Part shown: positions 2,805-63,577 of the stretch, in pieces | Position numbering within the stretch: position 1 is the stretch's first letter | How the letters are laid out: every line of letters starts with the position of its first letter | DNA from: Podarcis tiliguerta | Lineage: Eukaryota | Reading direction: 5' to 3' (one strand) | Assembly (NCBI GenBank): GCA_965153285.1 | Contig: OZ229111.1 | DNA: 64,000 bases | Notes under the pieces: generated by a model | Told to the model about the DNA's origin: nothing | Database searches by the model: none | The model's input: only the letters and a program-made list of their open reading frames with translations | Program-made: the position numbers and the translations under genes

Positions 2805-3024
2805 TCAGTCTCTCTTATGGAGGAAAGCCCACATCAGTTGATTGACTTTTTCAGGTTGCTCCTCACTAACCCAGTGGCTGGCTTCAGGGATGAGCTGCAC
2901 CTTGATGCTCTTCCGCACATTCTGCTCAATACGTGGGATAAGCCCTTGTTCCAGGAATCCATCCTTTCCTCCCCAGATCAGCAGGGTGGGCACCAGAATA
3001 TCCTTGCACTTTGCAGGAACCCAA
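2805..3024 (-). CDS. EPHX3: EPHX3-like A last coding exon (WGGKD...SHWV...HKRD*)
   Basis: 220 nt, TGA at 2807-2805. Confidence 0.9.
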
Positions 3025-6000
3025 CTGTAGGGATATAGATACACAGGCCAGATGGCACTTTGTTCAGCCTTCACAATGTTTACTTACCTGTTTATTTTTG
3101 TGTGTTTTGTGATCTTCCACATGACATGAAAGGTACTGCTGGACATCTAGTGCACTCTAGCAGAAGTTTAGAGCTCATTTCCATGTTAATGTTTTCCAAA
3201 AAAACCCAAAACCTGTTTGCAACCCCGTTAACTGAGAAAATCACTAGGAGTTTTGCATTGATAAGATTTGGGGTGCTATCCTGGCATACAGTTTCCCCCC
3301 ACCATTTAAAATGTAGCGTGACATGGTGCCATATCACTCAAAAAGCCACAGTTACATAATGCAACCGAGATACTGCAGTGTAAAAGGATCATTAGCAACT
3401 AGGAGAGAAGCACTAGCATTATAACCAACAAAACAAACACAATAAACCCCACATCTGAATGCAGCCACAGAGAAGACACCTGCAAATCTGCACTGGACAG
3501 CAGGCAACTCACCACTTTGGCCACTTACCCAAGTTGCGGCCAACCCTACCACTTTCCACACTAGCAGGCGTCATGCACAGCAGTGATGAGAAAAATCAAT
3601 AGAAATCCAGAAAGACAGCATGCCCACACTTCAGTTCCAATTCTAGAACCCAACCTTTCCCATTTCATCATAAATTACAATATCTCAGAATCCCCTTCAG
3701 AACAGTCACAGGATTTCCTCATCCCCCTTTCCCACCATTTAGACATATATTTTAGGGAGGAAGAGTGTTTTGTCCGCCTGCATCACATAATCCAGTGAAG
3801 AATGTTGTGACCTCTCCAAATATTATGACTAGAAAATTCCTGCTGCCAAACAAGTCCCACCCACCTCCGAGGGAAAAGCCTGAATGTACTGGTGCACCAC
3901 AACTGAGGAAAAGCATATGGTGCCAATACCACACGTGAGCAAATCTGGGGAGGAATGGGTTCTCACGTGGACAGGTTCCTGTAGTAATTCAGGACTGGTG
4001 TTAAACCTCCACACTTTGACAGGCTGTACAGGTAAGCCTCTAGCTCCTCATCTGTCAAACGGCGTGCTGGGTTCTGGGCTCCTGTCTTCTTGCCAGTCAT
4101 AATGAATTTTATTAGCTGTAGGGGAAAAAAGACACAGCACCATGTGGAAGCTGATTAAATGCAGACCCCATTTTCTGACCGAGAGGCAGCTCATGCCATT
4201 TTTATATATTTAGCCTCCCTTAGTCTTCCACAAAGTACCTTTGCGGGGGAAAGGAGGAAGCAGCATTGTCTCTTTCCCCCTATCCCTTTCAGCTGGCCCT
4301 GATCCTCAAAGAGGATTAGACATATGCATTGACATTGAGGGTACGGCTTTCGAATGGCTAGGAGCCAGTATGGCTATGCTCTGCCACCACAGATGGAGGA
4401 AGCATGCCTCTGGACGCCAGATGCTGGAAAGTGCAGGAGGGGAGAGTGCTATTGTGCTTAGGTTCTGCTTTGGGGCTTTGCATAGGCACATGGCTGGTCG
4501 CTATGAGAACAGGATGCAGGACTGTGTTTTGGACTACAGTTTAAGCCTTTCCCAGCACTCATCTCCACACTGACTAAAAAACTTTCGTATGATACATTTT
4601 TGTATGGCAAGCGGCAGGGAGGAGAATGGATGGGGAAGTGAAGAAATAAGCAAAGAAGGTCATAGTCCTCCCTCCCTCTGGCAGCACTAGAACATGTCAT
4701 AGCTTGCCATGGCCTCTTCATCCCAGATTCTAGGTAATAATCTCGCCACATCAATACCCAGTGCTTTTCTTCTGGGGGGACGCAAGGGTATGCATATCCT
4801 AAACATTTTGTGAATCTTTGTACTTTTGTCCATTTACTGTATTTATTTCTCCTAATTTGAACTATAAAATTGTGATTTTATTGAGTCAAAATGAGAGTAC
4901 CCCTAAACACCTTTTTAGGAAAAAAAGCATTGTCAATAGCTTAGAAGTAAACTTTAAAAGCCAGGCCATGTATACATAAAGCTAGGCAGGTGGGAGAAGA
5001 CACAGGATTATGCATTTTATGAACCAAGACAGAGAGCCCAGTGCATGACCTTGGATGAAGGGCAGTATAGAATTTTTAGAAATAATAGTAATAATAACCC
5101 TGCACCCAGAGCTGAAAGGAGACTGACAGAGAAATTTGGGATGAATACATAAAACACAGTTGAGAACTGTATTTTAGGATTGTGGAAGAGAACCATTAGT
5201 CCCCAGAGCAGAATAAAATGATTGGACCCTTTGGTTAATCTGCATGACAGAACATGAGCTTTTGAACCCACTCCCCAACCATTCCCTCAACTCACGTAAA
5301 AGTCATTTAAGGACCACAGGAACTCTGGTAGCTTTGGGAGCTGGAACAGAAACATGTGGTTGGATCGCAGCAGCTGGGTGGGATGTCGTGGAAAATATTC
5401 TGCAAGGTTGAAGGGAAAATAAGTTGTGTGTCAGGGCAGTGCCAATTTCTCCACACATGAAATGCCACCAGATACTGCGCAGTATTCAACTATGTTTCAG
5501 TTAGAGCAAACCCACTGAAATTAGTGAATGTGAATAAGTTACCGGTAGTTCCATTCATTTCAACAGGTGCACTCTATGTAAAACTTAGTTGAATGCCACT
5601 CTCAGAAACCAATCTTCAAAATAAAATGAAAGATGCCAACTGGAGTTGTTTCCTATTTTCCCCTAACATCTGCATCAACTTCCAGTCCAAGCAATGAGGG
5701 CAGGGAGGATCGTTTTGTGTTTTTTTTTAGAAACCCCTGCTGCCAGGCTCCCATTTATTCACAAGCAATGCTTGTGTCTTGGGATTGGGAACTTGAGCAA
5801 AGCAGACAACCTCCTTCCCACTTCCTCCCAAAAGATCTGTGGTGTGAAATGATGGCCCACCCTGACTCTGCATCCTAAGGGCAATGCAGTCATGGTGGCC
5901 TTTTACACTTCCGCTGGCTTCTCTCTTCCATCCGCAATCCTGTTTAGAGCTAGAAAATGCCAATAGCCATGGTGAGAACCAAAATCATGGGACTTACCTA

Positions 6001-8035
6001 ATAAAACATGTGGTTGAACAGCATCCATGACAATCAGCTTCTCCAGCATATTGGGGTAACTAGCAGCAAATGCAAAAGCTATGATTCCTCCCCAGTTATG
6101 CCCCACCAGGATGCACTTAGGAATCTCTATAAAGAACAAATAGAAAGCAATGAAACAGAGACAATGGGCTGTATTCAGTGCTTATCATACTCAAAATAGA
6201 CCAAGTGAAGTTCATGGGCATGAGTAACTTAGGTTCATAATTTCAGTGGGTCTACTTTGAGTTGGACACAACCTATCATGGACAAGTAAGTATCTGCCTA
6301 TGGGAAGCTACAAGCCTGCTAGATAATTTCCCAAACTCACATACCAGTTCATCCCCACAATGCTCCATTCAGCACCCATGCAACACTTCTGAAAGCTTAG
6401 CAAGACTGAGCAGAGGGCATTTTCCTCCCATTGCTAGAAGGCAAGCCACTGCAATGGCAACCCAGACCCTTCCTCCAAAACAACCATTTCCACTCTTACC
6501 ATTCTTCTTATTGGGGCTCAGAGCTTCAATGACATCATGTACATCTGCCAGCAGAGCATCCCTCTGATAGTGCTCACAACCAGCTGGTGCGTCGGAAAAG
6601 CCATAGCCCCGCAAATCGAGGGCCACCACCTTATAGGCCCACTTAAATTCCTGCAATTGATGGCGCCATGCAAACCTGTTGAAATACAGCCAAACCATAA
6701 AGGGATAAGTAGAGAGGAGGGCTTCCCTACCTGAAAATTGCAGGACATTGGTGCCTACTTTTGTTGTGTTGCTTTAGTCCTGCTCTGTAACTTCTACAGT
6801 TTTTGCTGCTCGGTTTGTTTATTATTTGTTACAAAGGTTGCTGGTTTGAACTATACTGTGTACAAATGATTTTATCAATGCTTATTGTACACTAACCTAG
6901 GATCTTTAGATGAAAGACAATTTAAAGGTATTTTTATTAAATATAACTATTCGCCTCCTTTCGTTTCCTCACCGTCTAAAAATCAAGAAACCCCCACCAA
7001 GCTTTTGCTTAATTTATCATGACCTCTTTTACATTTGTTAAAACTGTAAGTCTACTGTAAATCATGTTGCTTCTGATTCTATGCAGCATAAGGTCAACAC
7101 TAAAAAAAAGTTGTATTAATTACAATTTAATGATGAAGGCCTTATGGTCATTCACCATGAGAGGATAGCAGCAATCAAGTCCCTTCCTTTGGGAAGTTAA
7201 TATTTCTGTCTACGGCCTTTGCCCCAACTTTGCAGGAATTTGCTGGCCAGAAAGGTATTACATGACATGTTGGCTGACAGATCTGTGGCCTATCACTTCC
7301 TGCATGAACCACACCTGGAGTAAACTGATATCAGCTCCAGTCATTGCACTTCTTCCTACTGCCACACAGCACAGCGACACTTACCAGTTCTGGGGAAATC
7401 CATGCAAGAAAAGCATCAGCTGAGCTCCTTCCTTGCCAGCAGCAACATAATGGAGACGCAGCCCTGAGTTCTTGAGCCCCCAAAGGACAGAGAAATAGGA
7501 CAGTTACACACAGACAAGAGCTCAGTGATAGTGACAGGTTCACAATATGCGACATTTCCTGTTAAGAGACAGCTGAGGGGAAACACTCTTTGCCCCTAAG
7601 ACTTTGAAGAACAGCTGTTGGTCACCATTGAAAATATCAGGGTAGAGGGACAAATAGTTTGACCTGGCAATAAGCAGCTTCCTATGTTCCTCCCAAGCTG
7701 TAAAATACATGACCAGGGTCCTGCCTTCAGCAGCTGTCTGTGAGCACCTGGCTATGGCTGGAAGCCTCCCCCTTCCCCTCCACTGTACTCACTTTTAGTG
7801 TCACAAAGCCGTGCTCCCCATGCGAGGCATCAGTGAGGCATCTTGGTGGAGTCTCCCGTCTCTTCTTGCGCAGCACCTGGAAAGGACCCCTAGACACCAC
7901 TAGTGATAGGGCCCACCAACAGTAGAAGGCAGCAGAAAGGAAAGCGGCACTATACACAACCAGCCAGGACACGGCATTAGAGACCTTCAGCATCAGGCGT
8001 GTGGGGATCAGTAAGAGGCGATAGAGAGAGGCCAT
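2805..8035 (-). CDS. EPHX3: EPHX3-like epoxide hydrolase, tandem copy A (368 aa, non-canonical active site)
   Basis: Seven GT-AG exons with matching phases: 8035-7793, 7470-7385, 6675-6500, 6126-5998, 5399-5296, 4115-3967, 3024-2805 (1107 nt). N-terminal hydrophobic anchor; motifs [35 protein letters not shown]. Lies downstream of BRD4, as mammalian EPHX3 does. Confidence 0.92.
3967..4115 (-). CDS. EPHX3: EPHX3-like A coding exon 6 (LIKFIM...LNYYRNLS)
   Basis: 149 nt, acceptor cctacag, donor GTGAGA. Confidence 0.9.
4759..4932. mobile_element. hAT-type MITE in an EPHX3-A intron
   Basis: TIR CAGTGCTTTT / AAAAGCATTG, 8-bp TSD TCAATACC/TCAATAGC. Confidence 0.75.
5296..5399 (-). CDS. EPHX3: EPHX3-like A coding exon 5 ([11 protein letters not shown])
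   Basis: 104 nt, acceptor ttgcag, donor GTGAGT; not represented in this frame in the ORF track. Confidence 0.9.
5998..6126 (-). CDS. EPHX3: EPHX3-like A coding exon 4 (nucleophile elbow GHNWG)
   Basis: 129 nt, donor GTAAGT. Confidence 0.9.
6500..6675 (-). CDS. EPHX3: EPHX3-like A coding exon 3
   Basis: 176 nt, FAWRHQ...DLRGYGFSD...ALSPNKKN, donor GTAAGA. Confidence 0.88.
7385..7470 (-). CDS. EPHX3: EPHX3-like A coding exon 2 ([12 protein letters not shown]...HGFPQNW)
   Basis: 86 nt, HGFP oxyanion motif, donor GTAAGT. Confidence 0.9.
7793..8035 (-). CDS. EPHX3: EPHX3-like A coding exon 1 (MASLYR...VTLK)
   Basis: ATG at 8035, upstream acceptor ttgcag (exon starts 8054), donor GTGAGT; 243 nt coding. 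Confidence 0.88.
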
Positions 8036-9229
8036 CCCCTCCTGTTGTTTGGGGCTGCAAGAGAGAGGCTGCAGTTCAGAAGAAAGAGAACATGCTTTGC
8101 ATCCCAAATTCAATGTCTGGCATTTACAAGTAGAGCTGGGCAAGAACCCTCCCCAAGAGCTGCTTCTAATTAATGTAGACCAGGGGTGGGGAACCTCAGG
8201 TCCACTGGGCAAAAGCCCTGTGAGACTTTCCTGGGCCACTGCCACTTTTCTTGGTGTGTAGAATTGTCTGTAGAAACATCTCACTTTTGCATCGTTAGAA
8301 TGCAACCTTTTCCCTCTTCTGTATGCACCAGTGTTATGCAGCCTAAGAAAGGTTACTAGCTGCTGTAGTCAGTCCTGGGGCAGATAAACCAATGCTCTGA
8401 CTTGCTCTACGGCTGAGGATACACCAGAGTGTTAATGCATGCATGGAATGCACAGATCCTATCTTTTCCTCTGTGCACTTTTGTCCATACAAGAGCACTT
8501 TTAAGTGAACTCCATCTCAGCCTTTACCATCACCACTAGTGGGCAGTGCTTGATGGAATATATTTGCACTGTTTGTTGTCGTCCCCTGTCTTAATTAGTA
8601 CTTCCCTACCCTCCTTCCCTGAGTTGTGGAAACCTGAGGTCCATTGTGGGCATACATGAAAGTATTTGTTTATTTTTAGATACAAGCTTTTGGATATACC
8701 AGACTTGCACAAAACACTGTTGGAAAAATGTAAAAAGTGTGTTCCCAAACAGCCCCACCAGCAGCCCACCAAGAAGCACCTCTCACTAACTGAAGTAAAG
8801 GGAGGGCGCTATGACAGATGGCACCCAGCAAAAGTTACCACACCCCTTTTAAAAAATGCCCACACAATGTGCTTCAGTACACCTATGGCTGGGATCATAC
8901 AGGTCTATGTTGGATCACCACCCTTAGTGCATTATCCACAGAATAGACAAATCTTAACTAAAGGGGGGGGAGTGCAGGTTGCCACTTGGATGAGGACAAC
9001 ATTGTGCAAATGTGACAATTATGCACACGTGATACTGAACCCACTTTAAACTGCACTCCAAAACATTTGCCCACGTATGTGCACATAAAATAGAAGACCT
9101 AACTGAAAGGCAACACGTTGGGATCTGAACGCATTGTTACAACGCACCCTAATAATGATTCTTGTATATATTTTTTAGTTACTGTAAAATCTTAGAAGGG
9201 GCGTGGCTGTTATGAGGACCTTGCACTTC

Positions 9230-10000
9230 GGGATCTGCCACGACACTACCGGTTGCAAGTCCTTTCTCAGAAGACCAGAAACTCGGACTCAGCCGCGTTA
9301 CAAACGGGAGTCCTGCCACGGGAGGCACGACGCGTGTCCATAGGAACTCAACCGAGTTCCAACCGAGCAAACTCTCGGTATCCAGCAAACCCAAGCAGGA
9401 GTGCTCGCCTGCTGACACGGCTGGGTTCTTGGCTGCCTTTGGATAAAGCGGTGGGGCTCCCAAGCTGAGATAGTCAATGGCGCGGGCAACCGAAACTCTC
9501 TCTCTCGGTACCTCAAGGAGCGGGGAGCCACTCGACGCCGCCCGGGCGCGTTCAATCTCCCCCTGCTCCCGCGACCCACTCGCTCCGGCTTCCGTTTTAT
9601 AAAGGCAGCGCCGCCCCTCCAGCTCCTCCCCGCCCGCCAAGGGAAGACGCGGCGGCACGGCGAGGGAGCAGCAGCGCTTCCTACCCCGCCTCCCGGGGCC
9701 TCCTGCTCCTTCCGCGGCTGCTTCGGGCGCAGAGCTCCGCCCGTCGGAGCGACCAGGAAGGCGAATGGGTTTCGGCCGACCAGGCCTCTCTCCGGCGGAG
9801 GGACGACAAGCCCGCTCAGGGACGGGGGCGGCTCTCGTCCACAGCTGCTCCCCCCACCTGCCCGCCTGCTTGATCTCGAGGGCCCGCCGAGAGAGCGAGC
9901 GCCCAGGGAGCCAGGTCTGGAGGGTCCGGGCGCAGGGCCGGATCTCACCCAAAGGAGACCCCGCCTCCTACAAGTCAGGCACGGCGGCAAGAATCATAGA
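9230..10000 (-). promoter_or_regulatory. CpG-island promoter of EPHX3-like A with TATA box
   Basis: CpG-rich; TATAAAA at 9601-9595 (minus); GC boxes; possible non-coding exon 1 donor GAG|GTACCG at 9512/9511; homologous to 21680-22000. Confidence 0.7.
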
Positions 10001-16131: not shown

Positions 16132-16351
16132 TCAGTCTCTCTGAAGGAGGAAAGCCCACATCAGTTGATTGACTTTTTCAGGTTGCTCCTCACTGACCCA
16201 GTGGCCGGCTTCAGGGATGAGCTGCACCTTGATGTTCTTGCACACCTTCTGCTCCATGGGTATGACAAGCCCTTTTTCCAAGAATACATCCTTTTCTCCC
16301 CAGATCAGCAGGGTGGGCACCACAATATCCTTGCACTTTGAACGAACCCAA
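16132..16351 (-). CDS. EPHX3: EPHX3-like B last coding exon
   Basis: 220 nt, WGEKD, GHWV, TGA. Confidence 0.9.
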
Positions 16352-19300
16352 CTGTAGAAGAAGATACACAGAAAAGAAATCTGCAAATTGGCATTGGACA
16401 TAAATCAGTTCACCATTTTGCGCCACTTATCAGAGTTGTGTCACTTTCCACCCTAGGGAGGCTCATGCACTGCAGCCATGACATAATCAGGAGGCAGCAC
16501 ACCCACACTTTAATTCCAATTCTATAAATGAACATTCTTTTAGAAATTAAAGTATCTCAGAATGGTCACAATATTTTCTCATCCCCTTTCCTGAAATTTA
16601 AATACAGATTGGTGGAGGAGGAAGAGTGTTTTGCCCCTCAGCACCACATGATCCGACAAAGAATTTGGTGCCGTCCAATTATTAGGAGCAGAAGGCTACT
16701 GCTGCCAAGCAGTTTCTTCCTCTGCGAAAAAATGCCAATCCCACCCATTATCAAAGCTGGGAATAAATGGTCTCTCACGTGGACATGTTCCTGTAGTAAT
16801 TCATGGGTGGTTCTAGACCCCTGTCCTTCGAAAGGCCATACAGGTAAGCCTCCAACTCCTCCTCTGTCAGATGATTCTGGTCTCCCGTCTTCTTGCTAGC
16901 CATAACAGACTTTATTAGCTGTAGAGAAAAAGACACAGCAGCATGTAGAGGCTAATTAAATGCACACCTCCTTGTCCTGTACAATACAGTCTCCTCAATA
17001 AGGCAGAGGCAGCTCATGCTACTAGAAAGCTTTGTAAAAAAATATTTCCTTAAACCACCTTGGGCAGGGCAAAGGAGTAAACAGTGTTGCTTCCTTTTAA
17101 AAACAAAAAACTGTCCCTGCCCATATGTCTTTACCTGATAGATCAGCTCAGTAATATTTAAAGCTTTTCCCAGCCTGCCTTCCTCCACTATCCACACAAA
17201 GGTAATCTACTGATCTTCACATGAGTGAAGACAAATGCACTAGCTCCATCCTATGGTCCACAAGCTGGAGGGTAACCATCTGCAGCAGGGAGACTTTTCT
17301 ACTTGACTCAGGTAGGCCTCCCATGCAATGTAGATTTTCCAGGGCTCTACATCACAAGAGGAGCCTACATAAAGAGCAGCCTCCCTGTCACAGATTGGCA
17401 CCCTCCAAATAATCCAGAGAGGGTATCAAAGCAAATGTACTTGTGCCTGCTCACATATCCCACTAGTTCATAGTATGCAATGTCTGAATAGGTTATGACT
17501 GCCCCTTGTTTAGCGTAAATACAGTTGTACCTTGGTTCTAGAATGTAATCCATTCCAGAAGTCCATTTGACTTCTGAATGTTCTAAAACCAAGGCACAGC
17601 TTCCGAATGGCTGCAGGAGCTTCCTGCACTCAATTGGAAGCTGCAGAAGCTGCGTTGGAAGTTCGGGTTCCAAATAATGTTTGAAAACTGGAACACTTCG
17701 GGGTTTTCTGTGTTTGGGAGCCAAAACGTACAAGTACCAAGGCGTTCGATAACCAAGGTACAACTGTACCACCACTCTTTCAAATTTCTTACAGGTGAGC
17801 TTTAAACACAAGGCACTCTCTATATGGAGTGAGGCTGGGGTGGAGGGGGCAGAAGAGACAGGGTTATGCTTCTTACAAACCAAAGCAGAGAGAATCACCC
17901 TTCATGCAGAGCTGAAAGCAGCCTGGCAGAAGGGTTTGGGATATGCCCATGAAACACATTTGAGATTTGTAGCTCAGCATTGAGCGAAGAGAATGAACAG
18001 TCACCAGCAGAGAATAAAGCGCTTTGGCTTCACAAAGTTACACAGACAGCTTGGAAAAGAGATTTGCTGTATTTATAATTCCTAATGCAAGAAGGCATGA
18101 ATGGTGAGGCAAACTCCCCACCCTGCACTCACATAGAAGTCATCTAAGGACCACAGGAGCTCTGGCAGCTTTGGCAGCTGGAACAGGAACATGTAGTTGG
18201 ATCGCAGCAGCTGGGTGGGATATCGTGAAAAATATTCTGCAAGGTGGAAGGGAAAATAAGTTGCCCTGCCACACATTAAGTATCACCAGAACTACTCATC
18301 AAGAGAACCAATATATGGCCCTTTGTTTTTTCTTTTTATTTGCTTTTGCATCTATTTTGTGCAAAACTGAAATAAAAATACTTTATAAAAAAAGAAACAA
18401 AATCACCACAACCAGAAAACTATCTTCAAAATAGAGGGCTCACCTGGGGTTGCTCTCATCTATTTCCCTTTAACATCTGGATCAACTTGCAGTCTAAGCA
18501 GTGGGGGGGGGGGGGAGCTGGGTGGCTGTGTTTTTTAATGTACTCCTAGTACAAGGCTTCCATCTAATCATAAGCCGTGGTGGTGTGTTGGTGTCAGGCA
18601 CTTGGATAGATCAGACAACCTCCCTTCTTCCTCCAAAAAGAGCTGTAGTGTAACAGTGATGGCTTATGCAGGCTCTGCATCCTAAGGGCAATGCAGTCAC
18701 AGTAACTATTTAACTGTGCAGCAGGGACTAGTCCCTGGCAGATCCAGGCTCCTCTCTCCCTTTTCCAATTCTGCTTAGAATTAATTAGTGAATGCCAAAA
18801 GCTGCACACAATCGTAGTGAGTACCAAATCCCGATAGCACAAGACTCACCTGCTAAGACATGTGGTTGAACTGCATTCATAATAATAAGCTTCTCTACCA
18901 AATTGGGGTAACAGGCAGCAAACTCAGAAGCTATGGATCCACCCCAGTCATGCCCCACCAGGATGCACTTAGAAATCTCTAAAAGACAAATAAAAGACAT
19001 CAGAACAGAGACAATGTGGACAGGTATCAGCCTACTTAACAATTCCCCAACCCAAACACCGATTCATTTCAAGGAAGCCCCATTAAGCATCAATGTAACA
19101 TTTGAAAGCTTAAGTATGTTGAATGCATGGCCCTCTCCTCCCATTGCCAGTAGCCAAGCCACTGCAGTGGCAAACCGGACCCTTCCTCCAAAACAACCAT
19201 TTTCACTCTCACCATTCTTCTCACTGGGGCTCAGAGCAACAATGACACCATGTACATCTGCCAGAAGAGCTTCCCTCTGATAGTGCTCAGAACCAGCTGG

Positions 19301-20740
19301 TGCGTCGGAAAAGCCATAGCCTCGCAAATCGAGGGCCACCACCTTAAATGCCCGCTTAAACTCCTGCAATTGATGGCGCCATGCAAACCTGTTGAAATAC
19401 AGCCAAATCACAATGGGATTAAGTAGAGAGGAGAGCTTCCCTGCTCTGCAGATTTTATAGTTTTTGCCTCTCCATTTGTTGTATATATATGTTTTGAATA
19501 ATGGCTCACCCCTTGTTGTTCATCTGTTCCATCAGGCTTTTGGGAATTGACTGCTTTTAATGAAAGGACTGGTGTTGTTTTTGTTGTACTTATTCATATG
19601 CTTTAAATAGATTTTATATCTGTATATAGTTTTAATTCTATTAAGATTTAATTGTTTTTAATGATAGTTTTTTTCTATGTTTTTAGCTATTCTTGTTTTT
19701 AATCGGAAAGCCACCTTTAGTCTTGTCAGGAAGAAAGGCATGGTAATAGCAATACTACTGGTGAACACCTGATGGTCATTCACTGTGCATCATAGAAACT
19801 TGATAGCATGTAGCTGAGTAACATCATCTCCTCTAGGTCATTTCCTTAGGGAAGTTAATCCTTCTGTTCAATACCTTCTCCTTAACTTTGCAGTAAACTC
19901 CCTTAACACATTGGCCAACAGATCTGTAGGCTGACTTCCTGCATGAGCCACACCTGCAGTAAATTGATATCAGCTCCAGACACTGCACTTCTTCTAACTA
20001 CCACACAGCACAGCGACACTTACCAGTTCTGGGGAAATCCATGCAAGAAAAGCATCAGCTGGGCTCCTTCCTCGCCAGCAGCAACATAATGGAGACGCAG
20101 CCCTGAGTTCTTGAGCCCCCAAAGGACAGAGAAATAGGACAGTTACACACAGACAAGAGCTCAGTGACAATAGCTCAAGAGTTTTGCATGCATAGAGTGA
20201 CAGGTTCACAATCTGTGACATCTCCTTTTAAGAGGCAGCTGATGAGAAACACTCTTTGCCCCTAAGACTTTGAAGAACAGCTGTTGGTCACCGTTGAAAA
20301 CATCAGGCTAGAGGGTCAAATAGTTTGACCTGGCAATAGGCTGTTTCCTATGTTACTCCCAGTCTCTCAAATACACCAGCAGCCCAGAATCCTGCCTTCA
20401 CATCCTGCTTCAGCTGCTGTCTGTGAGCACCTGACTGTGGCTAGGAGCACCTGACTATGGCCTCCCCCCCCCCCCACTTTCCTGTCACTGTACTCACTTT
20501 TAGCGTGACAAAGCCATGCTCCCCATACGAGGCATCAGTGAGGCATCTTGGTGGAGTCCCCCGCCTCTTCTTGCGGAGCACCTGGAAAGGGCCCGTAGAC
20601 ACCACCTGCCATAGGGCCCACCAACAGTAGAAGACAGCAGCAAGGCAACCGGCACTATACATAGACAGCCAGGACATAACATTAAAGACCTTCAGCATCA
20701 GGTATGTGGGGACCAGCAAGAAATGTGTGAGAGATGCCAT
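16132..20740 (-). CDS. EPHX3: EPHX3-like epoxide hydrolase, tandem copy B (365 aa, canonical active site)
   Basis: Exons 20740-20498, 20109-20024, 19388-19213, 18978-18850, 18236-18133, 16918-16779, 16351-16132 (1098 nt). GHDWG nucleophile, RSNY and NYYR tyrosines, WGEKD acid and GHWV His are all present. Confidence 0.93.
16779..16918 (-). CDS. EPHX3: EPHX3-like B coding exon 6
   Basis: 140 nt (9 nt shorter than copy A), MNYYRN. Confidence 0.9.
17522..17766. mobile_element. Tc1/mariner-type MITE, related family, in an EPHX3-B intron
   Basis: TIR CAGTTGTACCTTGGTT / AACCAAGGTACAACTG, TA TSD. Confidence 0.85.
18133..18236 (-). CDS. EPHX3: EPHX3-like B coding exon 5 ([11 protein letters not shown])
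   Basis: 104 nt. Confidence 0.9.
18850..18978 (-). CDS. EPHX3: EPHX3-like B coding exon 4 (GHDWG)
   Basis: 129 nt. Confidence 0.9.
19213..19388 (-). CDS. EPHX3: EPHX3-like B coding exon 3
   Basis: 176 nt, donor GTGAGA. Confidence 0.88.
20024..20109 (-). CDS. EPHX3: EPHX3-like B coding exon 2
   Basis: 86 nt, HGFPQNW. Confidence 0.9.
20498..20740 (-). CDS. EPHX3: EPHX3-like B coding exon 1
   Basis: 243 nt coding; acceptor puts the exon start at 20759; donor GTGAGT. Confidence 0.88.
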
Positions 20741-21299
20741 CCCCTCCTGTTGTCCGGCGCTGCAAGAGAGAGGCCACAGCTCAGGGGTAGATAACATGCT
20801 TTGTATGTCAATGATCTCAGGTTCAATGCCTGGCATCTCCAGTTGGGACAAGATGCCAATCAATGGCTTGATTTGGTATAAGGTAGTTTCTTATAGGAGG
20901 ATTCTTTTTTTAGATGCTATTGAGAATGTCTTTAGGCCACACACTCAAACACACGCATGACAGTTTAAGTAACTAACAAAACATTATTCAAGTTTCAAGG
21001 ATGGTACAGGGTGCCTAGGCAGACATTACTAGGTCGACGTCAGAAATCGAGTTCTTCCCTTTGAAGCAACAAGATGCAAAATCTCTCTCGGGATGCGACC
21101 TATAATGAGCAGGGCAGAATCTCGCACAAAAGCTACAGGTGGCATAGCAGGGAGGGCGGGGGGAATCCCCTGGCACAACAAACTAAGTGCACTAAGCCTG
21201 CAATCCTAACCCCATATACCTGGGGGCCAACCCAAGTGAAATCAACAGGACTTCCTTCTGAGTAGACATAGTTAACGACAGCGCCTCCTTCCAGCAAGG

Positions 21300-22180
21300 C
21301 TGGATAAGAGAGGTCGCTATCTTATCTTCCTGCCAGGCTTGTTACAAACGGAGTCCTGCCTTGGGGCCAAAGGCTAGGAGGCCGTTTCCACGGAAATTCC
21401 ACAGAAAGTCTCCCGTCGGCAATCCTCCCGAAACCCACATCGGATGATCGCCCCGCTGACTCAGGTGGCGGAGCCCATGCAATTCCTCCTACCAGTCAGA
21501 AGAGTGCTAATCCTAACCCGTCTTGCCACTTTTCCTACCTGCAAGAAGTGAGGAAAGCCACTCAAATTCTGGCGCCAAACAACCCTTTGGTAGACGGTGC
21601 CTCGAATTCAGCTCCCCGAAAAGGTGAGCCCCGTAAGTAGCTCTGCCTGCTCCCCCATCGATCTCCTACCTACACTCTCACCTTGCCGCTCCTGCCTCCG
21701 TTTAAAAAGCCGCAACTCCAGCTCCTCCCCCCTGCGAAGGCCGCTATCTCTGCGCTAGTGGGAAGAAGCTCTGCAGCTGCGGGCGGGGAAGGCAAAGGAG
21801 TTGGAGCGCCTCACGCCTCGGGGCCTCGCGCTCTCGTCAATGCAGCGTCGGGCGCAGAGCTCCGCCCCGTCAGAGCGACCAAGAGGGCAAAGCCCACTCG
21901 GGGGGTGAGAGGCGGTTGTTGTTGCTCCCGGCAGCTCCCCGCTCGCCTGGCGGAGCTCGGGGCGCCGCTTCGACTCCGCGCCCGCCGAGAGGGCCCTGAC
22001 CTCGCCCGAAGGAGACTCCGTTTCTAGCATGGCGGCTGGCAAGAGAGAGCCGGGTATTGGCCGAGTTCTTTTTCCTCAAGAAAACCCCCACCTGTTCAGG
22101 CCCGCTTAACTCCCAGGAACCTCGCAGGGATTCAAGGAGGGGAAGTGGAACCCCGCCCGACGCACAAACCGCCTTTTCTT
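21300..22180 (-). promoter_or_regulatory. CpG-island promoter of EPHX3-like B
   Basis: CpG-rich; shares TCGGGCGCAGAGCTCCGCCC and CTCCAGCTCCTCCCC blocks with the copy A promoter; the TATA position is degenerate (TTTTTAAA, 21701-21708). Confidence 0.65.
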
Positions 22181-27297: not shown

Positions 27298-28852
27298 AAC
27301 ATCCTCTGGACCCTTGCCCCTCTTGGCTGATAAAAGCTAGCAGGAAGGTGATTAATGCCTCCTTGTGAGAGGGGGTGGTCCCTGCCTGCTTGAAGTGGTA
27401 AAACCACTCCTCAATAAACCCTCCTTCAGTTCAGAAAACCTAACAACTACCAGCCAGTTGCTAACTTCCCTTTAATGAGCAAGGTTCTTGAGTGGGTGGT
27501 CGCGGATCATACTCAGGTGCTCTTGGTGGAAACTGATTTTCTAGATCCATTTCAAAGAGGGTTTAGGCCAAAGTTTGGCACATACACTGCTTTGGTTGCC
27601 CAGTTTGAGGATCTCTTGTCAGGAGATGGGAAATGTGTCCCTGTTAATTCTCTTCAGCTTCTCAGCAGCTTTCAGTACCATCAACCATGGTATCCTTCTG
27701 GAGAGGCTGTCCAAATTAAGGATGGGTAGCATTGTTTTGCAGTGGTTCCAGTCCTACTTGGATGGACATTTCCGGAGGATAATGCTTGAGTGTGGTTTTT
27801 TTGCACCATGGAGCCTTCAGTGTGGGGTTCGTCAGGATTTGCTTTTACCCCCTATGCTGCTTAACATTTACATGAAACTGCTGAGTGGGGTTATGCACAA
27901 GTTTGGAGTATGTCGTCAGCAATATGCTGATGACACTCAGCTCTACTTTTCCTTTACATCTACAGGTATGGCAGTGGATGTGCTGGAATGTTGTCTTGCC
28001 TTGGTAATTAACTGGATGAGAACTAACAAATTGCAGTTCAATCCAGGTAAGACTGAAGCGGTTCTTTAGACTGGGTGGATGGGAGGTTGTCTGCTGTTAA
28101 TGGGGTTACACTCCCTCTGAACGAGCAGGTATGTAGCTTGGGGGGTGGGTGCTTCTTGATCCTTTGCTGTCACTTGAGGCTGAAGTGGCCTCAGTGGCAT
28201 GGAGTGCTTTTCATCAGCTTCAGCTGGTGTCCCAGCTGTGCCCCTATCTGGGCAGGGATAGCCTAACTTCTGTGGTCTACTTCTAGGTTAGATTACTGAC
28301 ACGCGTTATAGGTAGGGCTGCCTCTGAAGTCAGTTTGGAAACTTCAATTGGTGCAGAATTCAGGTTGTTCATGGGGCCAAGCTGCCAATTAGCTTCCAGG
28401 CCCAATTCAAAGTGCTGGTTTTGATCTATAAAGCCTTTAATGGCTCAGGACTGCAATAGCTCAAGGATCAACTCTTGCCATATGCATTGACCTGGAAACT
28501 GCAGTCATCATATGAACCCTTCTTCATGCGCTTCCTCCATGAGAGGGTGGCAACAACAGAAGGAGCATGTTCTGCAGTGGATCTCCATTTGTGGTGTGCT
28601 CTCCCCAGGAAGGTCCAGCTAGCGCCTTCATTATCCACCTTTAGCTGCCTAGCGAATACGTTCCTCTTCAACCAGGCCTTGGGCTAATTAATAGACATCC
28701 TATACCCTTTAAAATGTGTTGGGCAGGAGGAACAGAGGTTACTGGTGTTTTGGTTTTGTGCTTATTTTTATTATATATTTTGTGCTTTAATCTTGTATTT
28801 TTATGCTGTGAACAGCCCTGAGATCTACACAAATTTAATATAAATAAATAAA
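27298..28852 (+). mobile_element. 5'-truncated, frameshifted L2-clade LINE (RT remnant)
   Basis: Motifs LDPFQ.GFRP, SAAF.TI.H.IL..RL, QYADDTQLY, WM..NKL..NP.KTE split across frames; (TAAA)n tail near 28840. Confidence 0.85.
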
Positions 28853-34134: not shown

Positions 34135-62700
<28,566 letters not shown>

Positions 62701-63577
62701 CTGCAAAAGCAAGCAGACACTCTATGTAGCCTTCTGTTACTTGTATTGGCTAGATAGGATCAAGTGAAATCCTCACAACTGAGTAAATACTCCGCATAAG
62801 AAGGGGAAAACACCATCACAAACACTTCCCACAAAAATGGCATTGGAAAAGGTTCACTTTTCCCCATAAGATTTTAATAAAGCTTTTTATGATACAATAA
62901 GATAAAAGCTAAAGAAAAACGAAGAGAAAAGAACATGCAGAGTCGTCTCTCAAAGGTAGCTCTTAACCCTTGCCTCACTTTTGATTTCTAGAAAATATGC
63001 TTAACTATAGTTAGGCCAAGTATATAATTCAACGTAAGTATCAAGTTTACGGGAAAAAGAGAAACAGTTAAAAATCACATAAAAATCTTAATATCCAGTG
63101 TAGTGAAATATGGGGACCAGCAGTGTAGCTGTGTGCCATGAAGCCCCTGGTTCAAATCTTCGTCTTAGCCATAAATTCACTAGGTGGCCTTAAGCTATTA
63201 CGTGAGGTGCGGGGAACGTAAGGCCCTCCTGGCCTCTCTATCTGGACTGTGGGACTTTCCCAGGCCACGCCTCCTCACTGGACTTACTCTGCACCCTTGT
63301 CAGCTTTTGTGTGGAATGTCCTTGGACTATGCTTGCCTGGAAGGACAACATGTGTGTGCGTGGAAGCTTTTGGCTGGAATGCAGCCCATTATACAGAGTT
63401 TAGAGTCATGTCTGTTGCTATGCCCACCTTTTCCTTGGCCCCATCTACCACCACCACCATATGGCCCCCAAAAGATTGCTCATGAGGAATGCAGCCCTTG
63501 GGCTGAACAAGATTCCCCACACTTGCACCGTAGTCTCTGCTTCTCATCTGTAATTAGGGGGTCATAATACCTTGTTC

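Follow-up and report, generated by a model that had tools for sequence, protein, structure and literature searches.

An EPHX3 paralog conserved in lacertid lizards encodes asparagine in place of the catalytic aspartate

In a 64,000-nucleotide stretch of the genome of the lizard Podarcis tiliguerta (contig OZ229111.1 of assembly GCA_965153285.1; hereafter the window), two genes resembling epoxide hydrolase 3 (EPHX3) lie in tandem on the minus strand. One of them, here called copy A, is a real, intact, transcribed, and correctly spliced paralog, and it encodes asparagine at the nucleophile position, where nearly all other EPHX3 proteins have aspartate. Among the functions that could be assigned to such a protein, the one that we favor, tentatively and with somewhat less than even confidence, is that of a membrane-anchored pseudo-epoxide hydrolase, i.e., a protein that would bind fatty-acyl lipids with epoxy or hydroxy groups without hydrolyzing them. 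The interest of the case comes mainly from the recurrence of the change from Asp to Asn across lacertids and snakes: the six lacertids checked keep an extra, constrained EPHX3 copy without the catalytic aspartate, and most snakes carry the same substitution.

Gene structure and catalytic codons of the tandem pair

Both genes were rebuilt from the raw window sequence. Copy A has GT-AG borders at every intron and a frame that is open throughout, in agreement with the open 368-amino-acid (aa) frame and normal splice sites reported in a preliminary description made from the sequence alone, and a tblastn search with the rebuilt model recovered the identical seven blocks in the window. The neighboring copy B is canonical; its exon 6 (16779-16918) lacks three codons of the lid that are present in copy A and in the worm lizard Rhineura, owing to a deletion. 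The two proteins are 79% identical, and tblastn found no third EPHX3 copy in the window. The contrast that had been described between Asn179, Asp203, and His226 in copy A and Asp, Asn, and Tyr in copy B was recovered codon by codon at the expected coordinates, with a single base separating the two copies at each of the three positions. The HGFP motif, the second ring-opening tyrosine (Tyr290), Asp317, and His346 are present in both copies, so that their retention in copy A, also part of that description, could be confirmed and located. The features of the pair are as follows (all on the minus strand).

2805..8035, minus strand: copy A, EPHX3-like paralog; seven coding exons, 1107-nt coding sequence, 368 aa plus stop
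8035-7793, 7470-7385, 6675-6500, 6126-5998, 5399-5296, 4115-3967, and 3024-2805, minus strand: exons of copy A, splice sites and frame rebuilt
7393..7404, minus strand: HGFP oxyanion-hole motif of copy A (residues 104-107), kept
6095..6097, minus strand: Asn179 of copy A, codon AAC, in the nucleophile elbow GHNWG; Asp in nearly all other EPHX3
6023..6025, minus strand: Asp203 of copy A, codon GAT, 24 residues after the nucleophile position (+24), directly after strand beta6
5356..5358, minus strand: His226 of copy A, codon CAC, in place of the first ring-opening lid tyrosine
3984..3986, minus strand: Tyr290 of copy A, second ring-opening tyrosine (NYYR), kept
2961..2963, minus strand: Asp317 of copy A, canonical charge-relay acid after beta7, kept
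2874..2876, minus strand: His346 of copy A, catalytic base after beta8, kept
16132..20740, minus strand: copy B, canonical tandem sister, 365 aa; exon structure as in copy A; orthologs in five lacertids
20740-20498, 20109-20024, 19388-19213, 18978-18850, 18236-18133, 16918-16779, and 16351-16132, minus strand: exons of copy B
18949-18947, minus strand: Asp179 of copy B, codon GAC
18877-18875, minus strand: Asn203 of copy B, codon AAT
18195-18193, minus strand: Tyr226 of copy B, codon TAC

Public annotation also contains a 377-aa isoform of a copy A ortholog, whose N terminus is nine residues longer because an upstream exon is joined immediately ahead of the ATG at 8035; across 8036-8062, the window sequence is in frame.

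Authenticity and transcription of copy A

Annotated orthologs of copy A, labeled epoxide hydrolase 3-like in public records, were found in Podarcis raffonei, P. lilfordi, P. muralis, Lacerta agilis, and Zootoca vivipara. All of them carry Asn179, Asp203, and His226, so that the three residues occur together in all six lacertid copy A sequences, while the copy B orthologs of the same five species all have Asp, Asn, and Tyr. The window model is 99.2% identical to the annotated protein of P. lilfordi (P0272), from which it differs in three residues. A DNA contig from an independent sample spans 5049-6588 with 11 differences from the window, of which the nine listed are all intronic. The idea that the three codons reflect a faulty assembly or a private allele was rejected and now deserves practically no credence, since the same residues are found in the genomes of five lacertids, each assembled and annotated independently, and DNA and RNA contigs of other runs also agree with them.

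Two runs from related organisms, X15 and X17, were guessed to be RNA. In X17, a spliced contig (record 9) links exon 3 (6500-6633) to exon 4 (5998-6126), and its exon 4 part has 0 mismatches; because copies A and B differ at 21 of the 129 nt of this exon, the contig represents copy A, and both AAC and GAT are present in RNA. The joints 6126>6500 and 3024>3967 appeared in these two runs, with CT..AC ends that correspond to GT..AG on the gene strand, and an RNA contig (record 13) reaches 20 nt past the copy A ATG. In X15, a very deep contig that is about 10% different from copy A is evidently the copy B transcript and the A-like contig is much shallower, contig depth being only a rough guide to the relative expression of the two copies. 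For the His226 codon (exon 5), support comes from the sequences of the six species. Thus, the confirmation in reads that the preliminary description had called for was obtained for AAC and GAT in spliced RNA, and for His226 it was replaced by the comparison among species. The same description had named GAC in reads or orthologs, or an unexpressed copy A with frameshifted orthologs that evolve near neutrality, as grounds for abandoning its proposal; the RNA contig has AAC, the orthologs have Asn, and copy A is transcribed and open in six lacertids.

Origin of the duplication

In a maximum-likelihood tree of 51 EPHX3 proteins, the six A and the six B sequences formed sister clades (support 100/99), with Rhineura just outside the pair (99/96), and snake EPHX3 appeared as a separate clade (100/100) on a long stem of 0.43. 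The duplication is therefore lacertid specific and older than the split of Podarcis, Lacerta, and Zootoca; the tree shows copy A to have been born in the lacertid lineage after the separation from Rhineura and before these three genera diverged. Tree and gene neighborhood together nest copy A within vertebrate EPHX3, inside the squamate branch and at a conserved locus. By comparison with copy B and other lizards, the substitutions Asp179Asn, Tyr226His, and Asn203Asp were shown to have been fixed on the copy A stem.

The divergence between the two copies is a mosaic. Synonymous divergence (dS) is 0.22 overall and ranges from 0.05 in exon 2 to 0.62 in exon 6 (3967-4115 versus 16779-16918), while intron 1 is 91% and exon 2 98% identical between the copies (7385-7792 versus 20024-20497). 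The low dS of exon 2 and the similarity of intron 1 suggest past gene conversion that homogenized part of the pair.

Constraint on copy A

Evidence of constraint came from protein rates, from the contrast between exons and introns in the read tables, and from a neutral simulation; the spliced window protein was used for translation, alignment, trees, and the ratio of nonsynonymous to synonymous substitutions (dN/dS). Within the same six species, copy A has 27 variable sites and copy B 43 (binomial p 0.07), with crown tree lengths of 0.073 and 0.133 substitutions per site and stem lengths of 0.097 and 0.121, respectively; copy B, though canonical, thus evolves faster. Between run X17 and the window, we found 5 differences in 526 nt of copy A exons and 67 in 1823 nt of its introns (Fisher p 0.0008), i.e., the exons are about four times less diverged than the introns. 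When neutral substitution was simulated to d = 0.11 (half of the A-B dS), ignoring indels, the frame remained open in 0.9% of the runs. The slower rate, the exon/intron contrast, and the simulation indicate that copy A is maintained and not decaying, under purifying selection that, judged by these rates, is at least as strong as that acting on copy B. In this respect the preliminary description, which took copy A for a gene that was not decaying, agrees with what we found in an intact and spliced gene of six lacertids. However, the copy A proteins are 95 to 99% identical among lacertids and their crown is shallow, so that the invariance of positions 179, 203, and 226 is expected from shared descent and is by itself no proof of selection at these sites.

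Predicted fold and position of the substitutions

Sequence searches were carried out by exon, with exon 7 compared to a representative library, and a large protein collection was searched with an alignment of separate exons (exon 5 omitted and exon 6 trimmed) together with one full-length match. The Protein Data Bank (PDB) search and the structure prediction were run on the P. lilfordi ortholog P0272. AlphaFold, with a 56-row alignment, gave a model with a predicted local distance difference test (pLDDT) of 92.5 and a predicted template modeling (pTM) score of 0.91, in which a long N-terminal helix (residues 2-49) precedes an eight-strand core plus lid, with the strands in their usual order. 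Strand 99-103 leads into HGFP, strand 173-178 into Asn179, and strand 196-202 into Asp203; the helical lid (207-297) holds His226, in lid helix 225-229, and Tyr290; Asp317 comes after strand 309-314 and His346 after strand 336-341. The best Foldseek matches were the solved epoxide hydrolases 8agn and 5ng7 (template modeling score of ca. 0.9), followed by the Bacillus megaterium epoxide hydrolase, fluoroacetate dehalogenase, Cif-like proteins, and soluble epoxide hydrolase; phmmer against the PDB reached an E value of 1e-52 to 5ng7, and the Pfam families PF00561 and PF12697 were precomputed for the ortholog P0152.

In this model, the fold, the membrane anchor, HGFP, Tyr290, Asp317, and His346 are shown to have stayed in place in copy A. 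The protein thus has the features expected of an alpha/beta-fold epoxide hydrolase of the EPHX3/EPHX4 branch as regards the fold with a helical lid, the HGXP motif, the His base with an acid after beta7, and descent. On the other hand, copy A and its five lacertid orthologs do not have an Asp nucleophile in the elbow after beta5, and only the second of the two lid tyrosines is kept in copy A, the first being His226. The acid at +24, Asp203, sits directly after beta6; the canonical Asp317 is retained as well, and bird EPHX3 proteins with a normal site also have Asp at +24.

The three substitutions across EPHX3

We polarized the fixed differences between copies A and B with Rhineura and other lizards, which assigned 17 to copy A and 19 to copy B. 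Three of those derived in copy A (V196L, N203D, and Y226H) fall at sites at least 90% conserved outside lacertids. The corresponding excess of changes at conserved sites (3/17 versus 0/19) did not reach significance (p 0.095 by the Fisher test and 0.53 by the Mann-Whitney test), and the clustering of changes at catalytic positions on which the preliminary description had leaned was not borne out.

The three positions also behave differently in other vertebrates. At +24, about 20 bird EPHX3 clusters with an intact Asp/Tyr/Tyr set have Asp, mammals have Ser, and some other birds have Ala or Gly. Since birds combine Asp at +24 with a normal nucleophile, N203D has no necessary link to the loss of the nucleophile and, on this comparison, is an ordinary variant of the position and no special rewiring. 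At position 226, His appeared only in lacertid copy A among ca. 90 EPHX3 clusters; the other departures were Phe in Alligator (P0183) and in one parrot and Asn in Notechis (P0310). Of the rewiring toward a Cif- or dehalogenase-like site that had been proposed earlier, the His226/Tyr290 pair and the Asp at +24 are indeed there, but the coordination among the changes was overstated. Similarly, its preference for a new function over decay stands as far as maintenance is concerned, and is weakened as far as it depends on a coordinated rewiring.

The nucleophile substitution is by no means peculiar to copy A. The GHNWG elbow was found in pythons, vipers, elapids, Pantherophis, Pituophis, and Ahaetulla, whose EPHX3 otherwise retains the catalytic set, while Thamnophis (two species) and both copies of Erythrolamprus have GHDWG. 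Forcing lacertid A and snakes together in the tree cost 36.8 log-likelihood units (approximately unbiased [AU] test, p 0.003), a rejection that makes the origins of the change from Asp to Asn independent. Overall, the state of the nucleophile changed at least five times on the tree, and Asp reappears inside the snake clade. The bird Rostratula benghalensis (P0221, partial) has GHNWG and Asp at +24, and the turtle Pelusios castaneus (P0170/P0313) has GHGWG, i.e., Gly at the nucleophile, both being single sequences. Taken over these alignments, the swap of the nucleophile is a recurrent squamate theme. The database entries involved are the following.

Snake EPHX3 entries examined: P0164, P0174, P0175, P0293, P0296, P0299-P0305, P0310, P0312
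Further EPHX3 entries grouped with the snake observation: P0173, P0308, P0176, P0311

A match of the nucleophile motif scan in P0179 was discarded as false, as it lies in the N terminus and this protein in fact has GHDWG. The open EPHX3 frames with an eroded alkylation step in Pelusios, Rostratula, Notechis, and Alligator are represented by a single sequence each. Among the papers searched, we found no article naming EPHX3 together with reptiles and no vertebrate epoxide-hydrolase pseudoenzyme.

Possible functions of copy A

Epoxide hydrolases of this fold work in two steps. In the first, the Asp attacks an epoxide polarized by two lid residues; in the second, the ester thus formed is split in the HGXP oxyanion hole by water that the His and its acid activate (see also PMC8244358). 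Both catalytic changes of copy A, Asp179Asn and Tyr226His, would fall on the first, alkylation half-reaction, and with the attacking carboxylate lost and one polarizer changed, the protein as encoded is probably unable to form the covalent alkyl-enzyme intermediate. It thus lacks an essential catalytic residue while being expressed and under purifying selection, as expected of a pseudoenzyme. As a non-hydrolyzing lipid binder, copy A would hold, shield, or present substrates that copy B hydrolyzes and could in this way modulate flux in the oxylipin and ceramide pathway of the epidermis, the canonical copy next door having freed it from the ancestral job. By analogy with the Asp110Asn complexes of fluoroacetate dehalogenase, which according to the titles of many PDB structures hold bound substrate, Asn can be a stable state in the epoxide-hydrolase fold that binds substrate without turnover. 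Other sauropsid EPHX3 proteins that lose residues of the alkylation step and yet have open frames (Gly in Pelusios, Asn in Notechis, and Phe in Alligator) would also fit a binder. Several observations, however, weigh against this function. A pure binder would need no hydrolytic apparatus, and yet the whole set of the second half-reaction (His346, Asp317, HGFP, and Trp180) is kept in copy A and in the Asn-bearing snakes. The apparent reversal from Asn to Asp within snakes (Thamnophis and Erythrolamprus) fits a near equivalence of the two residues at this site. Moreover, the Asp124Asn mutant of haloalkane dehalogenase activates itself by hydrolytic deamidation, to go by the title of the study (Pries et al. 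1995, cited in PMC3005927), and in Cif a His/Tyr pair supports catalysis (PMC8244358, PMC12918957), so that Tyr226His need not be inactivating by itself.

The same observations are what one would expect from a close rival, a latent hydrolase in which Asn179 is an encoded pro-nucleophile. In lacertid A and most snakes, the folded enzyme would hydrolyze its own Asn side-chain amide to Asp and then act as an epoxide hydrolase, a possibility that we consider real but doubtful. The candidate chemistry is that of the normal cleavage of the ester intermediate, with His346, the acid, water, and an oxyanion hole formed by HGFP and Trp180, and the mature form would use a Cif-like His226/Tyr290 pair to open the ring. 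Besides the precedents just named, this explanation is favored by the fact that the residues serving the hydrolytic half-reaction are all conserved, both in lacertid A and in at least 11 Asn-bearing snake species, by the independent appearance of Asn in lacertid A and snakes and apparently also in Rostratula, and by the repeated state changes with Asp regained in snakes, which are expected if both codons yield nearly the same mature protein. The Asp333Asn mutant of mouse soluble epoxide hydrolase is reported to undergo a similar slow reactivation (Pinot et al. 1995). Conversely, the fluoroacetate dehalogenase mutant is stable enough to be crystallized with its substrate, so that self-activation is not general; the Gly of Pelusios at the same position is beyond such a rescue; and Asn and Gly are the two replacements of GAC that can be reached by a transition, so that their recurrence may be a product of mutation bias where the site has become dispensable. 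If true, the pro-nucleophile would amount to a zymogen-like delay encoded by a single codon, and would explain why AAC and GAC are swapped in squamates while the other catalytic residues stay fixed.

The remaining explanations appeared weaker than either the lipid binder or the latent hydrolase. Copy A might have adopted a different chemistry, in which His346, in a dyad with Asp317 or Asp203, serves as general base toward a bound lipid and no covalent intermediate is formed, e.g., direct hydration, isomerization of an epoxyalcohol or a hydroperoxide, or ester hydrolysis, with Asn179 and His226 as hydrogen-bond donors. Copy A retains the fold and the pocket along with the base and the acid residues, a possible second acid is located next to the base, His226 is unique and fixed, and other alpha/beta-fold enzymes function without a covalent nucleophile. 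It is nevertheless improbable, as no such mechanism is known within the epoxide-hydrolase subfamily, the bird Asp at +24 coexists with a normal nucleophile and need not signal a new mechanism, and the sequence indicates no particular new substrate. We give very little weight to slow decay, in which copy A would be a redundant duplicate heading for loss and its open frame and transcription mere leftovers. The loss of the catalytic nucleophile and a fairly high pairwise A-B dN/dS (0.48, and 1.35 in exon 7) speak for it, but the frame is open in six species, the protein rate is about half that of copy B, the exons are far more conserved than the introns, and a frame drifting neutrally from the time of the duplication would almost certainly have been interrupted by now. 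Less likely still is a rescue at the RNA level, by adenosine-to-inosine editing of the first A of AAC, which would then be read as GAC and make copy A an enzyme switched by editing. A single A-to-G change of the ADAR type would suffice, but the spliced exon 4 RNA contig had 0 differences from the genome (a weak argument, as contigs hide minor variants) and, within 5400-6700, no inverted repeat was found to pair with the exon 4 region or to cover the AAC codon.

Genomic neighborhood

Beyond copy B, putative BRD4-type exons lie on the same minus strand, at about 35.6 to 63 kb of the window. By this gene content, the locus keeps a BRD4-EPHX3 neighborhood, which, as at the human locus, is the mammalian arrangement as well. 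Upstream of copy A, a GC-rich stretch, mirrored by a rise in GC upstream of copy B at 20001-22000, may putatively correspond to the promoter and 5' untranslated region of the gene.

8036..10000, minus strand: GC-rich stretch upstream of copy A, GC 0.53 versus ca. 0.44 in neighboring windows
35665-41614, minus strand: Gln/Pro-rich C-terminal exons, BRD4 type (putative)
54792-55220, minus strand: ET domain, BRD4 type (putative)
62302-62721, minus strand: start of the second bromodomain, BRD4 type (putative)

Repeats were seen at several points. An open segment on the plus strand at 27418-28066, between copy B and the BRD4-type gene, resembles a fragment of a reverse transcriptase of the long interspersed nuclear element (LINE)/CR1 type. 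Inverted copies of a short interspersed repeat are located at 5484-5594 and 6189-6262, in the introns on either side of exon 4, and share a core of 19 nt that is 89% complementary. Finally, 4724-4907 is a very high-copy repeat, at which the DNA runs show extreme contig depth and numerous spurious joints.

Comparison with known systems

The closest reference is mammalian EPHX3 (also ABHD9 or EH3), the ortholog family of copy A, whose annotated relatives bear the name epoxide hydrolase 3. Mouse EPHX3 hydrolyzes an epoxyalcohol esterified in acylceramide and supports the water barrier of the skin (PMC7948417). Mammalian EPHX3 and copy A share the N-terminal membrane helix, HGFP, the second Tyr, the Asp, and the His; however, the mammalian proteins (opossum and rodent sequences) have the Asp nucleophile, the Tyr/Tyr pair, and Ser at +24, and no duplicate was seen among the sequences examined. 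Lacertid copy B resembles copy A in its seven exons, its protein sequence, and its adjoining position on the same strand, but, like other lizard EPHX3, it keeps Asp/Asn/Tyr, and it differs further in the lid deletion and in its faster evolution within lacertids. Snake EPHX3 shares with copy A the Asn in the elbow and an otherwise complete catalytic set, although of independent origin and with Tyr at 226 and Asn at +24; in most snakes, the Asn-bearing gene appears to be the only copy.

Cif of Pseudomonas aeruginosa, with the catalytic residues Asp129, Glu153, His177, and Tyr239 (PMC8244358, PMC12918957), has in common with copy A the alpha/beta epoxide-hydrolase fold, a His/Tyr pair for opening the ring, and an acid at +24, the residue equivalence (His226 = His177) being drawn from spacing only (+24, +47/48). 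Unlike copy A, it is a secreted bacterial protein whose Asp nucleophile is functional and which lacks an acid after beta7. In the search with P0272 it was a distant match (E value 2e-17), about fiftieth among the PDB matches. As copy A is nested inside vertebrate EPHX3, the likeness would be convergent, and copy A, which shares neither common descent with Cif nor its Asp nucleophile, is by this placement no relative of it.

The laboratory mutants D124N of haloalkane dehalogenase and D110N of fluoroacetate dehalogenase carry the same substitution at the same structural position of the same fold, with opposite outcomes, since D124N activates itself by deamidation, according to the title of the report, and D110N is stable and traps substrate, according to PDB titles. 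In contrast to both, the Asn of copy A is natural and conserved. It offers a long-lived natural variant with which to ask whether the self-deamidation of the laboratory mutants occurs in nature and whether a vertebrate epoxide hydrolase has a non-catalytic job, and it bears on how the reptile epidermis builds its lipid barrier.

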